Origin: Obrimoposthia wandeli | Taxonomy: Eukaryota | Length of the DNA stretch: 64,000 nt | Assembly (NCBI GenBank): GCA_977020255.1 | Contig: CDROCS010000252.1 | Span: 1-64,000 of the forward strand | Reading direction: 5' to 3' | In this document: one piece after another, positions 5,826 through 46,931 of the stretch | How the letters are laid out: each line of letters starts with the position of its first letter | How positions within the stretch are numbered: position 1 is the stretch's first letter | The notes under the pieces: generated by a model | Seen by the model: the letters and a program-made list of their open reading frames with translations, nothing else | What the model was told of the DNA's origin: nothing | The model's database searches: none | Translations under genes and position numbers: made by a program

Positions 5826-6521
5826 TTAGCTAGTAGCTTGCGTTGGCTGACGACGTAATAACAAGATAATAACTAATAATAGTAGAAGACCAATTAGACA
5901 CAGTAAGCCAATAATAAACAGACTATTATCAGAATCTTTATTCTCGATAAGATTTATGTCCGAGGCTTGCTGACCTAATTTACGCTCTACTGGTTTAAAG
6001 CCATTTGAGATACTAACTTGAGCAATAGATAGAGCGGGCTCGACTAATATTTGAGAAGGATATGATACTTCAACAACTTTACCTGACTGAGTACCGAATT
6101 TAATATTAGCGAGTTCAATGTTAACGGCTTTATTGGTTTTAGTAGAAAATCCAATACGAGCAAGATGTCCCTCCCCCATTACGGGCTCCGACGGTTTTAA
6201 TAAGCTAATAGCGTAACGGATTCGTCCCGTTCTAACATCGACATTATTTGCAATTTCATAAGCAGACTCTGAAAAAAACTCACCCTTTTGAATTTGTGGT
6301 CCAGATAGTTTCGAATTGACATCAACGACAGATAAAGCCTCATTTGAATAAAAGACTTCCAACTCCATACCATAGGAAGCAGGTATATTTTCTCCGTGAA
6401 AATCTAACCAACGAATACCATCAAGGTCTTCCGTTGAAACTTGTATTCGTCCTTCACCTAGAGCAAGACTTGATAATAAGAATAAAGAGAGTGATAAAGA
6501 TAGAGATAAAAGGTACTTCAT
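5826..6521 (-). CDS. Signal peptide + single cohesin-like domain + C-terminal transmembrane anchor
   Basis: YGMELEVFY..LSVVD..QIQKGEFF..NNVD..GRIRYAISLLKP.EPV.GEG.LARI.F pattern typical of non-cellulosomal cohesin domains; hydrophobic LFIIGLLCLIGLLLLLVIILLL followed by RR. Confidence 0.78.
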   Translation of the reverse strand: MKYLLSLSLSLSLFLLSSLALGEGRIQVSTEDLDGIRWLDFHGENIPASYGMELEVFYSNEALSVVDVNSKLSGPQIQKGEFFSESAYEIANNVDVRTGRIRYAISLLKPSEPVMGEGHLARIGFSTKTNKAVNIELANIKFGTQSGKVVEVSYPSQILVEPALSIAQVSISNGFKPVERKLGQQASDINLIENKDSDNSLFIIGLLCLIGLLLLLVIILLLRRQPTQATS

Positions 6522-6587: not shown

Positions 6588-8702
6588 TCACTGCAATGGA
6601 TTACATTGAGTAGAACCAAAATGGCTACCCAAAATCGCCAAATCCTGAATATTAATGGTGCCATCCTTATTCAAATCGGCTTTAGCATCATAGTCTGCAT
6701 CACCTTGATTTGAACGATAACGTGCAGCCATAAAAGTAAAGTCTGCAATATCAATACTACCATCGGCATTAACATCGCCTGCTAACAGCTCAATTGAGCC
6801 AAGATCTACAGCAGCACCTTCTTCAATATTCGCTGCCTGACAGCTTTGAACGTAATTTTCAGAAGCCAAACTAATAATGAATTCACCATCACGCAAGCCA
6901 TCAAACTCAAAACGTCCTGTTTCATCGGTAATTACAGTAACCTGACGGCCATCGATCGTTAAGACGACTTCAATGCCCGAATAATCTGAAACACCTGGTA
7001 TCTCAATCACACCCGATACCGAACCTGAGCCGCCATGTACACCGTCATCGATACGGATTGTGGCTGGAGTTAAAGCGACTTGTAATAGCTGGCCATTTTC
7101 ATCAGATATTTCAGCTGCACAAGTAATTTGAACATCTCCCGTAGTAAAATCAGCGATAACATCCGCTAGTACAAAACTACCAGTACCTGCGAAGGACAAT
7201 TCAGGTGCAACTAAAGTTTCAGTTCCTGTCACAGAGCTAGCGCTATACATTAATGGCAAAGTCATCGAGTTCTGAGAACCGAATAAGCCATTATAGCTGG
7301 CCTGGGTTACAGATAAAGAAGCACTTGAAAGATTACAGCTAACATCTAAGCCGTAGATATCAGTACCTGAAACATCGATTGAGAATTCCGATAGCTGGCT
7401 GGCATACGGGTCAATCACAGAGATTGCAGGAGTAATTACGATTTCATTCCCAGCCTTAGACTTCAAACTTAACCAGCTTAAGCTGGATTCAAACTTAATG
7501 TCATTTTCAACTTTTTTCATAATGAGGTCATAAACAATAGCAATATCACCATCTATAGAAAGTTGATCGATTAATTTTGTTTGGAACTCTGTGGCATTTG
7601 GATCTTCAGGGAAAATGGCATTACGGTCGACTACCTGATCTGATTCAAAGTCGTATAGATAAAATTCAGTTCCACCAACCTCATCATCTGTTCCATTATC
7701 ACTACGTACATATTGAACGAGTCCGTTATTAGTCAATAATCGAGGTAATAAGCCACCATAACCGAAGACATCAAACGGCACCTTATGCTCAACAATATTT
7801 GAAGCTATTGTATCAATTAATAGTATAACCAACTCACCCTCATCATTTCTTGCAGGTAAGGTTATATATTTACCATTATTTGAGATCAAAGCCGTATGCT
7901 GGATACCCTTAGTAATATTGATGTCATAAGTTAAAGGGATTAGATCTCTTATCGATAATAAATTCCTAGTCACTACATTGTATTTGTAAAATCGACTAGC
8001 ACCTTCCAAACTTTTAGATTCATAATCTGCCTGTAATATCATATCTCCTTGGTTATTAATATCTAAACCATGAGCCCCAGATAGCTTTTCTAAATTTACA
8101 ACATTTCCATTTAATAAAGTATGAGAGACTGGAACCAGCGTTTCTTCATTACTTAGCTTATTGAAAATTAATGTATTACCACCTCTATCATATTTTAGAA
8201 ATTGACCATTGGGAGATACCGACCATAATGTTTCCACATCAGACTTATAGATTGATATTTCCTGACTGATGAAACTGTATCGATAAGCTATACTCGAAGT
8301 CACACTGCTATTAACTTGGACTTCATGAGTGAACAAAATACTTCCTGCTGTCTCATCTTCGAAGAATATAAGTGAAAATGACATTCCATTTTTTTTAGAA
8401 TTTTTCATAATACGAGCAGATGATAAAGTTATATTTGAAATCCTATCATATCGGTGAATAATATAATCGACAGTCAAAGGGTCAACTACATTTTCATGCT
8501 CGGTTACATAAACAATATATTTACCATTCGACGTGATATCAGTTCCTGTTCCTCGTAAAAATAATAAAGACACCATAGGTTTATTACCCTGATCGCCTAA
8601 ACTTACCCCATCAAAATTAGGATTTACAGGAAAGCTTTCTGGTATGACTGCAGATGAAATCTGCACTATAAATAGTAAAATAAACGTGGTGAGTAGTCGC
8701 AT
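6588..8702 (-). CDS. Secreted modular protein A: propeller-like N-domain + cohesin-like + X-module + dockerin
   Basis: Sec signal MRLLTTFILLFIVQISSA; repeats S[NP]NG[KQ][YF]; C-terminal GDVNADGSIDIAD...ADLNKDGTINIQD duplicated Ca-binding dockerin loops. Confidence 0.85.
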   Translation of the reverse strand: MRLLTTFILLFIVQISSAVIPESFPVNPNFDGVSLGDQGNKPMVSLLFLRGTGTDITSNGKYIVYVTEHENVVDPLTVDYIIHRYDRISNITLSSARIMKNSKKNGMSFSLIFFEDETAGSILFTHEVQVNSSVTSSIAYRYSFISQEISIYKSDVETLWSVSPNGQFLKYDRGGNTLIFNKLSNEETLVPVSHTLLNGNVVNLEKLSGAHGLDINNQGDMILQADYESKSLEGASRFYKYNVVTRNLLSIRDLIPLTYDINITKGIQHTALISNNGKYITLPARNDEGELVILLIDTIASNIVEHKVPFDVFGYGGLLPRLLTNNGLVQYVRSDNGTDDEVGGTEFYLYDFESDQVVDRNAIFPEDPNATEFQTKLIDQLSIDGDIAIVYDLIMKKVENDIKFESSLSWLSLKSKAGNEIVITPAISVIDPYASQLSEFSIDVSGTDIYGLDVSCNLSSASLSVTQASYNGLFGSQNSMTLPLMYSASSVTGTETLVAPELSFAGTGSFVLADVIADFTTGDVQITCAAEISDENGQLLQVALTPATIRIDDGVHGGSGSVSGVIEIPGVSDYSGIEVVLTIDGRQVTVITDETGRFEFDGLRDGEFIISLASENYVQSCQAANIEEGAAVDLGSIELLAGDVNADGSIDIADFTFMAARYRSNQGDADYDAKADLNKDGTINIQDLAILGSHFGSTQCNPLQ

Positions 8703-8902
8703 ATTAAATCTCTTTTTTTTATGAGACGCGACTCTAAAAGAAGAGAGTAAAAAAAAGAATACCTGACTTTACGATAAGCTTAGATATACTAAATAAGTAC
8801 CAGTGAATAATTATTGTACTATCCAATTCACATTAATAACGTAATCGTTTAGAAATTAAATATTCGGCCTCAAAAATATTTGAGACCGACGTACTAATTA
8901 AT
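8703..8902 (-). promoter_or_regulatory. Duplicated intergenic cassette copy 1 (terminator of B + promoter of A)
   Basis: Colinear with 11012-11208: ACTCTAAA, AAAAGAAT.C..G.CTTTAC, TATACTAAATAAGTACC, TTATTGTACTATCCAATT, TCGGCCTCAAAA..GACCGACGTACT. Confidence 0.75.
8864..8889 (-). terminator. Stem-loop terminator after paralog B
   Basis: Minus strand TCGGTCTCAAA-TATT-TTTGAGGCCGA then AT-rich tract. Confidence 0.6.
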
Positions 8903-11023
8903 TTACAAATTACATTGAGTTGAACCAAAATGGCTACCCAAAATTGCTAAATCTTGAATATTAATCATACCATCTTTATTCAAATCAGCTTTAGCATCAT
9001 AATCAGCATCTCCTTGATTAGAACGATAACGCGCGGCCATAAAAGTAAAGTCTGCAATATCAATACTACCATCAGCATTAATATCACCCGCCAATAGCTC
9101 AATCGAACCTAGATCAACTGCACCACCTTCCGCGACATTAGCAACCTGACAACTTTGTACATAATTTTCAGAAGCTAGGCTAATCGTAAAGTCACCATCG
9201 CGCAAACCTTCAAATTCAAAACGCCCTGCTTCATCGGTAATAACTGTGACTTGACGACCATCAATCGTTAAAACAACTTCGACACCGGAAAGGTCGGTAA
9301 TACCCGGAATTTCAATGACACCCGATACCGAACCTGAGCCACCATGAACACCATCATCGATACGGATTGTCGCTGGCGTCAAAGTAACTTTTAACAGCTG
9401 GCCTTTTTCATCAGAAACTTCAGCTGCACACATAATTTGTACATCTTCCGTGGTGAATTCTGCGATAACATCTGCCAACACAAAGCTACCTGAACCAGTG
9501 AAAGGTAATTCAGGTGCAACCAGAGTTTCAGTTCCTGTCACAGAGATAGCGTCATAAATTAAAGGCAGAGTCATAGTATTTTGAGAGCCAAACAAAGCAT
9601 CATAGTTGGCCTGGGTTACAGATAAAGAAGTACTTGAAAGGTTACAACTAACATCTAATCCATAAATATCAGTCCCAGATACATCGATAGAGAATTGTGA
9701 AGTTTGATGCGAATAAGGATCGATTATTACATCTGCAGGAGTAATGCGTATTTCGTTGTTAGTAGTCGATAAATAGGACCAAAATATCTGTATTTCAATC
9801 TCTTCTTGGCCCGAAACTATTTTTACTAAAGCGTCTATCCTTGAAACAACATCACCATCAAGTGAGATTTGATCAACCCATCTATTTTGATATTCTGTAA
9901 AATCCGAACCTACAGGAAATATAGCCCTTTCAAGTAACCGATTTGAAATGAAATCATAAAGATATAATTCTAATTCCATTTCATCCGCATTATCTAGTTT
10001 TTCATCAATCCTAAAATATTGAACAACTCCTGTATTGGTTAACAATCTAGCGGCCAAAGAGCCATTCTCGCTTAAACCGAATGGAACCTCGTGCGCTACA
10101 ATATTTAAAGTAATTGTATCTACTAACAATAATACTAACGCTCCAGTAGAGTTTCTGGCTGGTAAACTAATGTATTGGCCATTATTTGAGATTAATGGAA
10201 GATTTATTTTGGAGCTGAAAATATCTACGTTAATATCATAATCGAAACCTACTGGGATTAGGCTATCGAAAGATATGAACCCTTCTGTTTTTACATTGTA
10301 CTGATAATATTGGCTAGCACCTTCGACGCTTCCAGAATCCGAATCAATTGCCAATACCAAACTTCCTTGATCATTAATAGCATAACGAGTCAATAGACCA
10401 GGTCTCTCGAAATTCACAATATTTCCATTTGATAGAGAATAAGAAGTTGGTACTAATATATCGGTAGTACTTTCTTTATCAAAAACATATGAATTGCCAT
10501 TGTTACCGTATAAAAGAAATTGTCCATTAGGAGATATTGCCCACAATGGCCCCGTATTGGTTTTAAAAATTGAAACATCGTTACTCTCAAAGCTATATCG
10601 ATAGGTTGAATAAGATGCTTCTGTTAGATAAGTAAATACTATGCTCTGCGCAGATTCATCTTCAAATGACATTTTCAAAAATGCAGATTTATTAGTACTT
10701 TGTGGAGCTGAATTTTTCAGTATTCGATTTGACGATAATGTTGTATTCGATATACGGTCATGTCGATGAATAACATAATCGATAGTCAATGAATCTTCTA
10801 AATTTTCATGCTCAGTAACGTAGGCGATGTACCGTCCATTCGAACTAATACTTGTGGCTCCTACACCAAATCCTATTGACTGTTGAACAATTCTACTTGA
10901 ACTGCCGTGATTGATACCATCAGCATCAGGATTTATAGGATGGCTTTTGGTTAAGTCTGCAGTTGAAACCTGCAGTATAAAGAGTAAAACTAAGGCGGTA
11001 ATAAATCTCATGATATATCTCAT
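8903..11023 (-). CDS. Secreted modular protein B: propeller-like N-domain + cohesin-like + X-module + dockerin (likely start ATG 11011)
   Basis: N-domain aligns with protein A (YVTEHEN..LT.DY.IHR.DRISN.TLSS.RI.KNS); C-terminal ~285 aa about 85% identical to A by manual alignment. Confidence 0.85.
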   Translation of the reverse strand: MRYIMRFITALVLLFILQVSTADLTKSHPINPDADGINHGSSSRIVQQSIGFGVGATSISSNGRYIAYVTEHENLEDSLTIDYVIHRHDRISNTTLSSNRILKNSAPQSTNKSAFLKMSFEDESAQSIVFTYLTEASYSTYRYSFESNDVSIFKTNTGPLWAISPNGQFLLYGNNGNSYVFDKESTTDILVPTSYSLSNGNIVNFERPGLLTRYAINDQGSLVLAIDSDSGSVEGASQYYQYNVKTEGFISFDSLIPVGFDYDINVDIFSSKINLPLISNNGQYISLPARNSTGALVLLLVDTITLNIVAHEVPFGLSENGSLAARLLTNTGVVQYFRIDEKLDNADEMELELYLYDFISNRLLERAIFPVGSDFTEYQNRWVDQISLDGDVVSRIDALVKIVSGQEEIEIQIFWSYLSTTNNEIRITPADVIIDPYSHQTSQFSIDVSGTDIYGLDVSCNLSSTSLSVTQANYDALFGSQNTMTLPLIYDAISVTGTETLVAPELPFTGSGSFVLADVIAEFTTEDVQIMCAAEVSDEKGQLLKVTLTPATIRIDDGVHGGSGSVSGVIEIPGITDLSGVEVVLTIDGRQVTVITDEAGRFEFEGLRDGDFTISLASENYVQSCQVANVAEGGAVDLGSIELLAGDINADGSIDIADFTFMAARYRSNQGDADYDAKADLNKDGMINIQDLAILGSHFGSTQCNL

Positions 11024-11208
11024 TTTTTTATGAAACGAGACTCTAAAATAAGAAAATATAAAAAAGAATATCTGGCTTTACAATGTACTTATATATACTA
11101 AATAAGTACCAATTAGGAGTTATTGTACTATCCAATTGCAAGAGTAAAAGTAACAATTCAATAATAATACTCGGCCTCAAAAAAGATTAAGACCGACGTA
11201 CTTGTTAT
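11012..11208 (-). promoter_or_regulatory. Duplicated intergenic cassette copy 2 (terminator of C + promoter of B)
   Basis: Same ordered motifs as 8703-8902; ACTCTAAA is 29-36 bp upstream of the start in both. Confidence 0.75.
11171..11196 (-). terminator. Stem-loop terminator after paralog C
   Basis: TCGGCCTCAA-AAAAGA-TTAAGACCGA, homologous to 8864-8889. Confidence 0.55.
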
Positions 11209-13848
11209 TTACAAATTACACTGAGTAGAACCAAAGTGACTACCCAAGATCGCCAAATCCTGAATATTAATAGTGCCATCTTTATTCAAATCAGCTTTAG
11301 CATCATAATCAGCATCTCCTTGATTAGAACGATAACGCGCAGCCATAAAAGTGAAATCAGCAATATCGATACTACCATCAGCATTAATATCACCAGACAA
11401 CAGCTCAATTGAGCCCAAATCAACCGTACCACCCTCAGTAACATTTGCAGCCTGACAACTCTGCACGTAATTCTCAGAAGCTAAGCTAATAGTAAATTCT
11501 CCATCGCGTAATCCGTCAAATTCAAAACGACCAGTCTCGTCAGTAATTACTGTTACCTGGCGACCATCAATTGTTAGTACAACTTCAACACCTGATAAAT
11601 CAGCAACACCTTGTATTTCAATAACGCCTGATACAGAGCCTTCGCCACCGTGAACACCATCATCAATACGGATAGTTGCAGGAGTCAAAGTAACCTGAAG
11701 TAGTTGACCACGTTCATCAGACACTTCTGCAGCACAAGTAATTTGAATATCTTCAGTTGTGAATTCAGCATTGACATCAGCTAATACAAAGCTACCAGTT
11801 CCAGAAAAAGGTAATTCAGGAGCTACTAAAGTTTCAGTGCCTGTCACTGAAGAAGCATTATAGATTAACGGTAGAGTCATAGTATTTTGAAAGCCAAACA
11901 GGCCATCATAGCTGGCTTGAGTAACAGATAATGAAGAATTTGAAAGATTACAGCTAACATCTAAGCCATAAATACCTGCACCTGAAACATCAACGGTAAA
12001 CTGTGAAGTAGCATTTGAATATGGATCAATAACGGCATCTAAAGGGACGACCTTAACTTCAGTACCTTCCTGCGTATCACTAGAAACTGACGTCGTCAAT
12101 ATCCAAGTATTTGTATTACTAGTTCCTAATTCAAAAGTGAATACTCCGTCTTTTCCTAATAGTGGAGATGACGAACCGATATCATTTCCTAAAGCTTCCA
12201 ATATCATCTGAGCACGTTTATGATCAACGGCTTCCTCTAAAGTCACGTCAAAAGCAGCACCGCCACTCTCAATTTCTTCTCTAGCACTCGCAAAAGCAAG
12301 AGCGGAATATTCAGGATAATACTTAAAATAACTCGAGCTACCATCAGTATTTATTAAGCTATCCAACAATTCATTTTTTTTATTTTCTGAAAGGTTGTTG
12401 AGCATATACTTAGCAACCTCTGTATAAACACTAGCACCACTACCATCTTCAATGGACTTCAAGAAAAACCCTTTGTTTTCCACAAGCCCAACAGGAGAAG
12501 CATAAACACCGGTATCACTTATTAAGTTAAATGGTGTGCTTTCAGAAAGAATTGGATAATGCCCAGTATTAACAGTATCTGAACAATAAAGATTATTAGT
12601 TTCTGCATAGAAGCCTGCTTCTATATCATCATTCCGATTCATTGCCTCCATCGTGTCGTTAAAATACGGAGCAAGCACTCCTTCATATTCCGCTTGGGAC
12701 ATACCCGCATAAAAAGGATTCCCAACATGATCTAGAGCTTCATCTGATGGTAGGTTTGGATAACTATTAATAATTTCTAATGTATTCGGATCTGAAATAC
12801 CTTCTGTCTCTACTATTACTTCCTTAGCATCTTCAATTGTGAATCTTGCCACTTTAGGATTTTGGCCACGAACATTTGATAGAGTCTCAGATTTTTCGCA
12901 AACAGTATGCTTAAGCAGAGGAGATTGGAGCCCTGCATCATAAGACGAAAGGTAATAGTTGTAATTATTAGTTGTTGAAATTAAAGAAATACTATTATCA
13001 GGCAATGAACGTATAGGATCTAAAACGGGACCACCATCCGGTAAATTAAAAACTTGCCCTTGGTAGTGTAAAGTAGGCTCAACCTCATCACTAATATACA
13101 CCATCCCTAAACTTCCAGAACCAGCAGGAATCGAATATGTAGAACCATTCGGATAAACTAAACTATAGCTTTGAGTATTATAGGAAGGAGTGTGTACGAC
13201 ATAACCACTATCATTAACATAACGAGTCATACCTGGAGCAAATGTATCACCCCCTTCATCATTTTGACCCGTTAGCACTGTGTCACATGTTTCGATATAT
13301 GAATCAATATTACTCGTAAGCTCACTTAGCTTACATCGATAAACAGTTCTTGATGCAGTAGGTCCTTTCGAAAAAACAAAATAGTCACCAGCAACACCTT
13401 TGGGCACATAGCCAGTTCCAGAAGCTAGAATCACTGAATTACCGCGTAATTTAGCTTCTGAATTAGCCATAAATTCGCGAGCGATATCTTGATATTCAAT
13501 ATTGGTTGATGTAACACTTAATCCAATACTAGAGAATTCACTTGGATTATTTGGTAAATTAGGAAAATTCTCAAAAAAAGAAGACATAATATTTTCTGAA
13601 TTAACTACTTCTTGAATAATTTCTTCTTGAGTAAAAGAAACACTCCCGTTGATGACTTCAAAACCACCAGCAGTGTACAGAGTACCAAACTGACGAACTA
13701 TATAACCAGTTTCTTCACTTCTACCAACAATACTACCCTCAGAAGAAAACGCTAAATGTTTAATCCCTGTAATACTAACCCCAGCATCAACACTAGCTGA
13801 CAATCCAGCTAAGATTGTTGCAGTTCCTATGAGCAACTTTTTCATCAT
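11209..13848 (-). CDS. Secreted modular protein C: unrelated ~590 aa N-region + cohesin-like + X-module + dockerin
   Basis: Sec signal MMKKLLIGTATILAGLSASVDA; same C-terminal block ending GDINADGSIDIAD...DLNKDGTINIQDLAILGSHFGSTQCNL. Confidence 0.85.
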   Translation of the reverse strand: MMKKLLIGTATILAGLSASVDAGVSITGIKHLAFSSEGSIVGRSEETGYIVRQFGTLYTAGGFEVINGSVSFTQEEIIQEVVNSENIMSSFFENFPNLPNNPSEFSSIGLSVTSTNIEYQDIAREFMANSEAKLRGNSVILASGTGYVPKGVAGDYFVFSKGPTASRTVYRCKLSELTSNIDSYIETCDTVLTGQNDEGGDTFAPGMTRYVNDSGYVVHTPSYNTQSYSLVYPNGSTYSIPAGSGSLGMVYISDEVEPTLHYQGQVFNLPDGGPVLDPIRSLPDNSISLISTTNNYNYYLSSYDAGLQSPLLKHTVCEKSETLSNVRGQNPKVARFTIEDAKEVIVETEGISDPNTLEIINSYPNLPSDEALDHVGNPFYAGMSQAEYEGVLAPYFNDTMEAMNRNDDIEAGFYAETNNLYCSDTVNTGHYPILSESTPFNLISDTGVYASPVGLVENKGFFLKSIEDGSGASVYTEVAKYMLNNLSENKKNELLDSLINTDGSSSYFKYYPEYSALAFASAREEIESGGAAFDVTLEEAVDHKRAQMILEALGNDIGSSSPLLGKDGVFTFELGTSNTNTWILTTSVSSDTQEGTEVKVVPLDAVIDPYSNATSQFTVDVSGAGIYGLDVSCNLSNSSLSVTQASYDGLFGFQNTMTLPLIYNASSVTGTETLVAPELPFSGTGSFVLADVNAEFTTEDIQITCAAEVSDERGQLLQVTLTPATIRIDDGVHGGEGSVSGVIEIQGVADLSGVEVVLTIDGRQVTVITDETGRFEFDGLRDGEFTISLASENYVQSCQAANVTEGGTVDLGSIELLSGDINADGSIDIADFTFMAARYRSNQGDADYDAKADLNKDGTINIQDLAILGSHFGSTQCNL

Positions 13849-46577: not shown

Positions 46578-46603
46578 TGGTTGCGGGGGCCGGATTCGAA
46601 CCA

Positions 46604-46654
<51 letters not shown>
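46578..46654 (-). tRNA. tRNA-fMet (CAT), copy 3
   Basis: CGCGGGG...CCCCGCA-ACCA with C1:A72 mismatch, GGG/CCC anticodon stem, CAT anticodon, TTCGAAT loop. Confidence 0.97.
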
Positions 46655-46719
46655 ACATAAGATAGTTAAAAGCTTATCTTGGCTACTCTAAATAACTTAG
46701 AGATTTTCACGACTTAAAA

Positions 46720-46745
46720 TGGTTGCGGGGGCCGGATTCGAACCA

Positions 46746-46796
<51 letters not shown>
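46720..46796 (-). tRNA. tRNA-fMet (CAT), copy 2
   Basis: Identical 77-nt sequence. Confidence 0.97.
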
Positions 46797-46854
46797 ACAT
46801 CAGATAATTTAAAGCTTATCTAAACTTGCCACCTTTACAGTGCGCATTTTAAGT

Positions 46855-46880
46855 TGGTTGCGGGGGCCGGATTCGAACCA

Positions 46881-46931
<51 letters not shown>
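46855..46931 (-). tRNA. tRNA-fMet (CAT), copy 1
   Basis: Identical 77-nt sequence. Confidence 0.97.

Follow-up and report, generated by a model that had tools for sequence, protein, structure and literature searches.

A cohesin–X-dockerin locus in Oleispira-type DNA as a candidate minimal non-cellulosomal tethering system

The locus and its gene products

The sequence considered here, referred to as the window, is a stretch of 64,000 nucleotides (nt) from an assembly deposited for Obrimoposthia wandeli (NCBI GenBank GCA_977020255.1, contig CDROCS010000252.1, positions 1 to 64,000 of the forward strand). It contains a locus of four minus-strand genes, which are those for three paralogous subunits, C, B and A, and then that for a 231-amino-acid (aa) anchor protein. 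Each subunit carries both a cohesin and a dockerin, the anchor carries a single cohesin, and the matter of this report is which of these cohesins the subunit dockerins serve and what the locus as a whole may do. The genes and the hairpins between them are listed below; the subunits were defined by open reading frame (ORF) and translation, the anchor by translation, and the hairpins by a consensus scan, as pattern matches only.

6588..8702, minus strand: subunit A, 704 aa, with a signal peptide, a head of ~395 aa and a cohesin–X–dockerin cassette
8903..11023, minus strand: subunit B, 706 aa, with a signal peptide, an A-type head of ~395 aa and a cohesin–X–dockerin cassette
11209..13848, minus strand: subunit C, 879 aa, with a signal peptide, a head of ~570 aa and a cohesin–X–dockerin cassette
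5826..6521, minus strand: anchor protein, 231 aa
8864..8889, minus strand: terminator-like hairpin after the stop codon of B
11171–11196, minus strand: homologous hairpin after the stop codon of C

A Sec-type signal peptide stands at the start of each of the four proteins, as read from the sequence. Subunits A, B and C have in common a C-terminal cassette of ~290 aa; A and B share 62% identity along the whole protein, and the 82% identity of C to A is confined to the C-terminal 291 aa. The A gene lies 66 bp upstream of the anchor gene, no terminator-like hairpin was found between the two by the consensus scan, and they appear to be co-transcribed. The hairpins after B and C have stems of 11 and 10 pairs, respectively, followed by T-rich tails, and are near-identical to each other, which suggests that the terminator was part of the duplicated unit.

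The host contig is gene-dense and bacterial and forms part of an assembly of 1.35 Gb in 6912 contigs. The named relatives of the subunits belong to Oleispira, including OLEAN_C27190 of O. antarctica RB-8, the flanks share 86–90% nucleotide identity with a related Oleispira metagenome-assembled genome, and near-identical DNA occurs in metagenomes of marine biofilm, sediment and seawater. The window is Oleispira-type DNA, presumably from an associated or contaminating marine bacterium.

The cohesin–X–dockerin cassette

The three cassettes share one domain order, with the following boundaries.

7047..7454, minus strand: internal cohesin of A (residues 417–552), from AlphaFold2 (AF2), Foldseek/VIA-align and hhalign
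9356..9763, minus strand: internal cohesin of B (residues 421–556), 79% identical to the A cohesin
11662..12069, minus strand: internal cohesin of C (residues 594–729), 75% identical to the A cohesin
6795..7037, minus strand: X module of A (residues 556–636), a CarboxypepD_reg-like beta-sandwich
9104–9346, minus strand: X module of B, equivalent to that of A
11410–11652, minus strand: X module of C, equivalent to that of A
6603..6794, minus strand: dockerin of A (residues 637–700), from Pfam Dockerin_1
8912–9103, minus strand: dockerin of B, from Pfam Dockerin_1
11218–11409, minus strand: dockerin of C, from Pfam Dockerin_1

The dockerins were recognised by Pfam Dockerin_1 (PF00404) at A 641–691, B 645–695 and C 819–868 with 38.9, 35.5 and 35.2 bits, respectively, against a cut-off of 22.9 bits, and a scan of the genome with the same family returned these three sites too. 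The A dockerin has two calcium-loop repeats, DVNADGSIDIAD and DLNKDGTINIQD, both canonical, and thus shows the EF-hand-like calcium loop and helix (D-x-N-x-D-G-x-x-x/D-x-x-D) twice; its AF2 model has three helices, at model residues 240–247, 257–263 and 273–281. The X module matches Pfam CarboxypepD_reg at 21–29 bits, which is below threshold. Taken together, the X module and the dockerin (X-Doc) match the type II X-Doc dyads 4wi0_B, 2b59_B, 5k39_B and 3kcp_A at E values of 2e-11 to 2e-10 (phmmer), and superpose on solved type II dyads over 137–140 residues with Z 16.0–16.3 and a root-mean-square deviation (rmsd) of 2.0–2.7 Å (VIA-align). The X-Doc of the subunits is a homologue of the clostridial type II X-Doc dyads.

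The domain in front of the X module gave no match to Pfam Cohesin (PF00963) at E values up to 1, in either the proteins or the genome, and was recognised through its fold. The AF2 model of A 413–704, built from a 24-sequence alignment, has a mean predicted local distance difference test score (pLDDT) of 87.3 and a predicted template modelling score (pTM) of 0.71, with pLDDT of 91–97 in the cohesin part. For the whole A cassette, the top Foldseek match is 3kcp_A, the Coh9-X-DocII fragment of CipA (E 8e-20), on which it superposes with Z 17.7 over 271 residues. Model residues 5–142 align with the cohesins 2xdh, 4uyp_A, 6kgd_A and 1g1k_A at Z 14.9–15.3 and rmsd 2.4–3.0 Å, and more than 30 solved cohesins align with the internal domain at Z 13–15.3 and rmsd 2.3–3.0 Å over 127–135 residues (both VIA-align). 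A profile of 51 internal domains matches Pfam-positive cohesins with an hhalign probability of 91.7% (E 8e-7), and still does so over 126 columns when P0049 is left out (86.3%, E 5e-6); searched against the PDB, the internal profile ranked the cohesin 4uyp_A first, at an E value of only 0.5. The internal domain is a true cohesin with the nine-stranded beta-sandwich fold. The preliminary description of this DNA, made from its letters, had placed a cohesin directly N-terminal to the X-dockerin in each paralog, and this arrangement is borne out in three of three by AF2/VIA-align, hhalign and Pfam Dockerin_1, with the proposed cohesin coordinates within ~10 nt of the modelled boundaries.

Several short features of the cassette are widely kept. 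The cohesin is joined to the X module by a near-invariant DDGVHGG junction. Within the internal cohesin, Cys456 and Cys528 (in A at window ~7335–7337 and 7119–7121) are conserved, and this Cys pair and an IDPY motif persist down to 20–30% identity. Cys621 in the X module and Cys700 at the C-terminus after the dockerin (in A at window ~6840–6842 and 6603–6605) are conserved across the wide family. The C621–C700 and C456–C528 pairs are probably disulfides, which fits an oxidising compartment. The C621/C700 pair also recalls the dockerin "clasps" of PMC3821032.

The anchor protein and its location

The preliminary description had named a membrane anchor, and the 231-aa protein encoded downstream of A has the expected parts.

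Residues 1–22, minus-strand gene: signal peptide, read from the sequence
6036–6449, minus strand: cohesin (residues ~25–162), by fold and profile match
Residues 163–200, minus-strand gene: stalk, low-confidence/disordered (AF2 pLDDT <50)
5853–5918, minus strand: C-terminal membrane helix (residues ~202–223), followed by an RRQ tail

The AF2 model of the anchor (pLDDT 76.5) matches solved cohesins with Z up to 14.4 (Foldseek and VIA-align), and in hhalign the anchor matches Pfam-verified cohesins at 99% (E 8e-20). The window's own anchor protein has no Pfam Cohesin match; its orthologues in two related loci exceed the cut-off of that family (24.1 bits), at 35.7 bits in L019 and 25.4 bits in L025. 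The anchor domain is a cohesin. As to its type, a first anchor profile found nothing in the PDB, and the top five PDB matches of a later profile, at E values of 0.07–0.1, are all type II cohesins (2bm3, 5m0y_A, 3kcp_B, 2b59_A and 5g5d_A) from Clostridium thermocellum anchoring proteins. Type II cohesins also head the Foldseek list of the anchor, and in VIA-align type I and type II cohesins are tied at Z 12.9–14.4.

A C-terminal sorting signal on the anchor was considered and rejected, since the anchor alignments have no conserved motif before the membrane helix and NCBIfam gave nothing. Because the anchor combines a signal peptide with a C-terminal membrane helix, a basic tail and no conserved sorting motif, the complex would probably sit on the periplasmic side of the inner membrane in a diderm cell. 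This topology leaves unproven the "surface" scaffold of the preliminary description.

The internal cohesins had also been said to align with the anchor cohesin through named motifs. hhalign does pair these motifs, but they are generic cohesin signatures, and the two kinds of cohesin are not significantly alike in sequence (BLASTP E 1.5; hhalign probability 2.5–8.7%); in VIA-align they lean toward different structural subtypes. This bears on head-to-tail chaining, in which a dockerin would bind both the anchor cohesin and the internal cohesin of the next subunit and thus build a filament or mesh nucleated on the anchor, in that the two supposed receptors of one dockerin would have no detectable sequence similarity to each other. 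Another point against chaining comes from known proteins: where cohesins and an X-Doc occur together in a characterised protein (CipA, 3kcp/4fl4), the X-Doc is not known to bind the protein's own cohesins.

Distribution of the gene pair and the search for other partners

In an exhaustive profile search, 440 representatives had E values up to 1e-30, and among the best 150 of these 440 the full C-terminal cassette is present in at least 42 further clusters (50% identity). Related genomes have one to at least four subunits and always one single-cohesin anchor, at the same syntenic site (lineages that have lost the anchor are treated in the next section). Of the 11 sampled loci with a canonical dockerin, all but L020, a short contig of 6.5 kb which carries the subunit P0047, have the subunit and anchor genes side by side; the loci with the pair are the window, L005–L008, L015, L016, L018, L023, L025, L027, L028 and L029. 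The pair persists down to 21–36% anchor identity. In the distant loci L023, L025, L027, L028 and L029 the small downstream gene again encodes a signal peptide, a cohesin, a stalk and a membrane helix, and the pairs sit in unrelated genomic contexts, so that, as judged from gene content, the two-gene unit is a widespread, unannotated module. The literature yielded no paper on an Oleispira dockerin system or on the two-gene module.

As an alternative to chaining, the internal cohesins had been proposed to work like those of adaptor scaffoldins, by recruiting further dockerin proteins whose genes lie elsewhere. Every above-cut-off Dockerin_1 match in 15 Oleispira species genomes falls inside this locus, and the adaptor proposal therefore fails for Oleispira. 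No cohesin besides the anchor was found in the Oleispira genomes searched. Both results count in favour of chaining, as these genomes offer the internal cohesin no other dockerin, and no cohesin other than that of the anchor exists.

The sole other dockerin of the assembly (24.5 bits) lies on contig C3503 (L004, G000:C3503:86005-89151), where ORF 109–1677 encodes a large protein with an endonuclease/exonuclease/phosphatase domain and a dockerin at its end, and ORF 1723–2331 encodes a 202-aa neighbour with a PEP-CTERM tail and no detectable cohesin homology. The C3503 protein was rejected as a ligand of the internal cohesin: its Oleispira homologues are just 38–46% identical and have no dockerin, and the contig thus comes from a different bacterium. 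In four members of the wider family (P0089, P0093, P0133 and P0192) the dockerin is followed by a further tail of ~197 aa, and two of these tails are Cys-rich; none of the four is a cohesin.

Selection on the cassette and loss of the anchor

The synonymous divergence (dS) among A, B and C is 0.6–1.8, from which it follows that the paralogs are old and that recent gene conversion does not explain their likeness. The ratio of nonsynonymous to synonymous divergence (dN/dS) differs strongly from domain to domain.

Dockerin, among A, B and C: dN/dS 0.017–0.028, at dS 0.6–0.8
X module, among A, B and C: dN/dS 0.03–0.05
Internal cohesin, among A, B and C: dN/dS 0.09–0.135
Head, between A and B: dN/dS ~0.27

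The internal cohesin is thus the least constrained of the three cassette domains, which is what might be expected if it were a functionless relic, carried along because the cassette was duplicated as a unit. Such a relic is barely credible, given a dN/dS of ~0.1 at saturated dS and the retention of its Cys pair and IDPY motif at the low identities given above.

The lineages in which the anchor is missing serve for a comparison of the partners. The complete genome of RB-8 has one subunit (L017, G005:C1:3047000-3066000; 9568–11757, minus strand) and no anchor, no other cohesin and no other dockerin. A transposase fragment lies directly upstream of this subunit, and a conserved lactamase-fold gene lies 48 bp downstream. 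In L021 and L022 the anchor is likewise cleanly absent from the syntenic site, and L019 shows divergence of dockerin and anchor alike. Divergent dockerins are confined to these lineages, that is, to RB-8, L021 and L022 (anchor lost) and L019 (anchor diverged). In the three that lost the anchor, the dockerin is 61–68% identical to that of A, compared with 82–96% elsewhere; that of RB-8 has lost a calcium-loop ligand (D651G). The pairs used for dN were compared at similar dS, and changes were counted at sites invariant in 42 core sequences (47 sites in the dockerin and 47 in the internal cohesin).

Anchor present (A vs B): dockerin dN 0.017, internal cohesin dN 0.13
Anchor lost (RB8 vs L022): dockerin dN 0.25, internal cohesin dN 0.19
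Anchor lost or diverged (P0038, P0039, P0040, P0043): dockerin 11–18 of 47 sites changed, internal cohesin 7–11 of 47
More distant, with canonical dockerin (P0044–P0047): dockerin 4–8 of 47 sites changed, internal cohesin 19–23 of 47

With the loss of the anchor, the dN of the dockerin is ~15-fold higher, and the rate of the internal cohesin is barely changed. Of the three members of the more distant set that were looked up, P0044 (L023) and P0045 (L025) have an anchor gene next to them, and none was found on the short contig of P0047 (L020). Since the dockerin diverges upon anchor loss while the internal cohesin barely changes its rate, the constraint on the dockerin tracks the anchor. Judged by these substitution patterns, the comparison shows that dockerin constraint depends on the anchor and not on the internal cohesin of the same chain. 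On the best explanation, the internal cohesin is a genuine domain under selection, and the dockerin owes its constraint to another partner.

The same comparison bears on two further readings of the internal cohesin. In intramolecular capping, the dockerin would fold onto the cohesin of its own chain and remain closed until handed to the anchor; the cohesin–X junction is short and near-invariant, and the pTM of the three-domain AF2 model hints at a defined domain arrangement, as capping would have it. A selected interface in cis, however, should have held the dockerin constrained after anchor loss, and capping is accordingly rated very unlikely. Chaining meets a similar difficulty, as the dockerin relaxed ~15-fold in dN after anchor loss although the internal cohesin remained, its rate barely changed. 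On its side stand, besides the lack of other partners in Oleispira, the retention of the internal cohesin in every case under purifying selection, its evolution at the rate of the anchor cohesin, a ratio of subunit genes to single-cohesin anchor of at least 3:1, with B and C having their own terminator-like hairpins, and the conservation that the altered dockerin of the anchor-less RB-8/L021 still has (dN/dS 0.11). A three-chain competition prediction with the anchor cohesin, the internal cohesin and the X-Doc (score 0.13, mark 0.34), run without controls, is not evidence either way. The indirect evidence points both ways, though rather more against chaining than for it, and we consider chaining an unlikely account of the locus.

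Another possibility is that the internal cohesin receives a non-dockerin partner, such as an envelope protein, a subunit head or a glycan, and that the subunit is an adaptor in this sense. In surveys of non-cellulosomal cohesins, cohesin folds are found in many proteins whose genomes have no dockerin partner; this speaks for the possibility, as do the retention and selection of the internal cohesin and a constraint on it that depends little on the state of dockerin and anchor. However, no candidate partner was found, and just 4–6% of the internal-cohesin columns are conserved family-wide, with no conserved patch evident. As a reading on its own, an adaptor for a non-dockerin partner seems quite improbable.

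The subunit heads

The heads of A and B (window 7467–8648 and 9782–10960) and those of their relatives share 39–66% identity and evolve much faster than the cassettes; the A and B heads are 48% identical, and the C head is unrelated to them. Between RB8 and L021, the dS of the head is 1.49, compared with 0.36–0.44 for the cassette, i.e., the heads are mosaic relative to the cassettes, which points to recombination or to a swapping of heads. In 29 family members the head matched no Pfam family, and two feature searches for head function gave nothing usable, with a sub-threshold hint of PD40/beta-propeller. Pfam also found no carbohydrate-binding module (CBM) and no glycoside hydrolase domain in the locus proteins. 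A cellulosome was rejected as a reading of the locus, as the heads have no Pfam families and neither a CBM nor a glycoside hydrolase domain is present.

Elsewhere in the window, three tandem tRNA-Met (CAT) genes lie at 46578–46931 on the minus strand.

A tethering model and its relation to known systems

The reading we prefer, at what we judge to be about an even chance of being correct, is that the locus is a minimal non-cellulosomal tethering system made of type II-style cohesin and X-dockerin parts, in which the dockerin serves for tethering only, and the internal cohesin forms a stalk or receives a non-dockerin ligand. Each subunit, with a fast-evolving head and a constant cohesin–X–dockerin cassette, would be exported by Sec, and its X-dockerin would insert, with calcium, into the single cohesin of the bitopic anchor encoded just downstream. 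That the X-Doc binds the anchor cohesin as in CipA–SdbA is, from homology and co-variation, very likely. As several subunits share one single-cohesin anchor, the different heads would compete for it or alternate on it. The internal cohesin would act as a rigid stalk element fused to the X module via DDGVHGG, or would receive a non-dockerin ligand, and no filament would form.

Several points weigh against this preference for tethering. The model assigns the internal cohesin no specific function, and yet more than 90 sequence clusters retain this domain, at dN/dS 0.1–0.25. The anchor-loss comparison rests on three lineages only, and between two of them, RB8 and L021, the dockerin is still constrained, as mentioned above. 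The margins by which the anchor is assigned to type II are small (E ~0.07–0.1; tied Z). Moreover, over eight matched loci the mean pairwise identity is 33% for the internal and 32% for the anchor cohesin, with ~6% invariant columns in each; the dockerin over the same loci has 64% mean pairwise identity and 25% invariant columns. With both cohesins equally divergent, conservation gives no ground for taking the anchor to be the sole partner. For the same reason, the argument that the internal cohesin is too divergent (13–35% identity, 4% conserved columns) to be a receptor is void.

The closest known system is the Coh9-X-DocII part of C. thermocellum CipA with the type II cohesin of SdbA (3kcp, 4fl4, 2b59). 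In both, a cohesin is followed by an X module and then by a dockerin; the cassette finds its best structural counterpart in 3kcp_A, the X-Doc is homologous in sequence (E ~1e-10), and the partner is in both cases a single-cohesin anchoring protein, with SdbA-type cohesins as the top PDB matches of the anchor profile. Unlike CipA–SdbA, the Oleispira locus belongs to a diderm gammaproteobacterium, its anchor has a C-terminal membrane helix where SdbA-type proteins have S-layer homology (SLH) repeats, and each subunit has one cohesin, compared with nine in CipA. The Oleispira locus also has neither a CBM nor enzyme-borne dockerins to recruit, its heads of uncharacterised fold take the place of the scaffoldin body, and it has conserved Cys pairs.

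Among other systems, the adaptor scaffoldins (ScaA of Acetivibrio cellulolyticus, ScaA/ScaC of Ruminococcus flavefaciens) likewise combine cohesin(s) and an (X-)dockerin in one polypeptide, with the dockerin going into an anchoring cohesin; in contrast to the present locus, they require a second class of dockerin-bearing proteins, which is absent from the 15 Oleispira genomes. A metagenomic locus of another taxon (L026, 3073–12328) resembles the present one in having five adjacent genes that mix Pfam Cohesin, a CarboxypepD_reg-type X module and Dockerin, in proteins such as Coh-MAM-Coh-X-Doc, Coh-X-Doc and Coh-beta-propeller-LGFP-Doc. It differs in its anchor candidate, which has LGFP repeats, and in its several cohesin classes, and possibly represents genuine adaptor logic, or a multi-level non-cellulosomal network. 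ORF2375/2376 of Archaeoglobus fulgidus are also a non-cellulosomal cohesin–dockerin pair encoded by adjacent genes, and among single domains the internal cohesin matches the A. fulgidus cohesin 2xdh best (Z 15.3). This pair is archaeal, unlike the locus described here, and has no X module, membrane-helix anchor or paralogous series of heads; binding of its cohesin and dockerin is documented (PMC9705933).

Significance

If the dockerin did have two receptors, the locus would encode a calcium-dependent, non-covalent polymer of interchangeable heads on a membrane anchor, which would be a new principle of fibre or mesh assembly in the diderm envelope, possibly within the periplasm. As an orthogonal pair that Ca2+ can switch, the parts may also be of use for tethering in Gram-negative hosts.

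Cohesin–dockerin pairs have been known chiefly for holding together the cellulosomes of Gram-positive bacteria. The locus described here presents a compact, enzyme-free version of two genes in marine oil-degrading Gammaproteobacteria and their relatives. It offers a clean setting for the role of these modules in the diderm envelope and for the question of self-assembly by a cohesin and a dockerin of the same chain, with the anchor-less RB-8 as a natural control.

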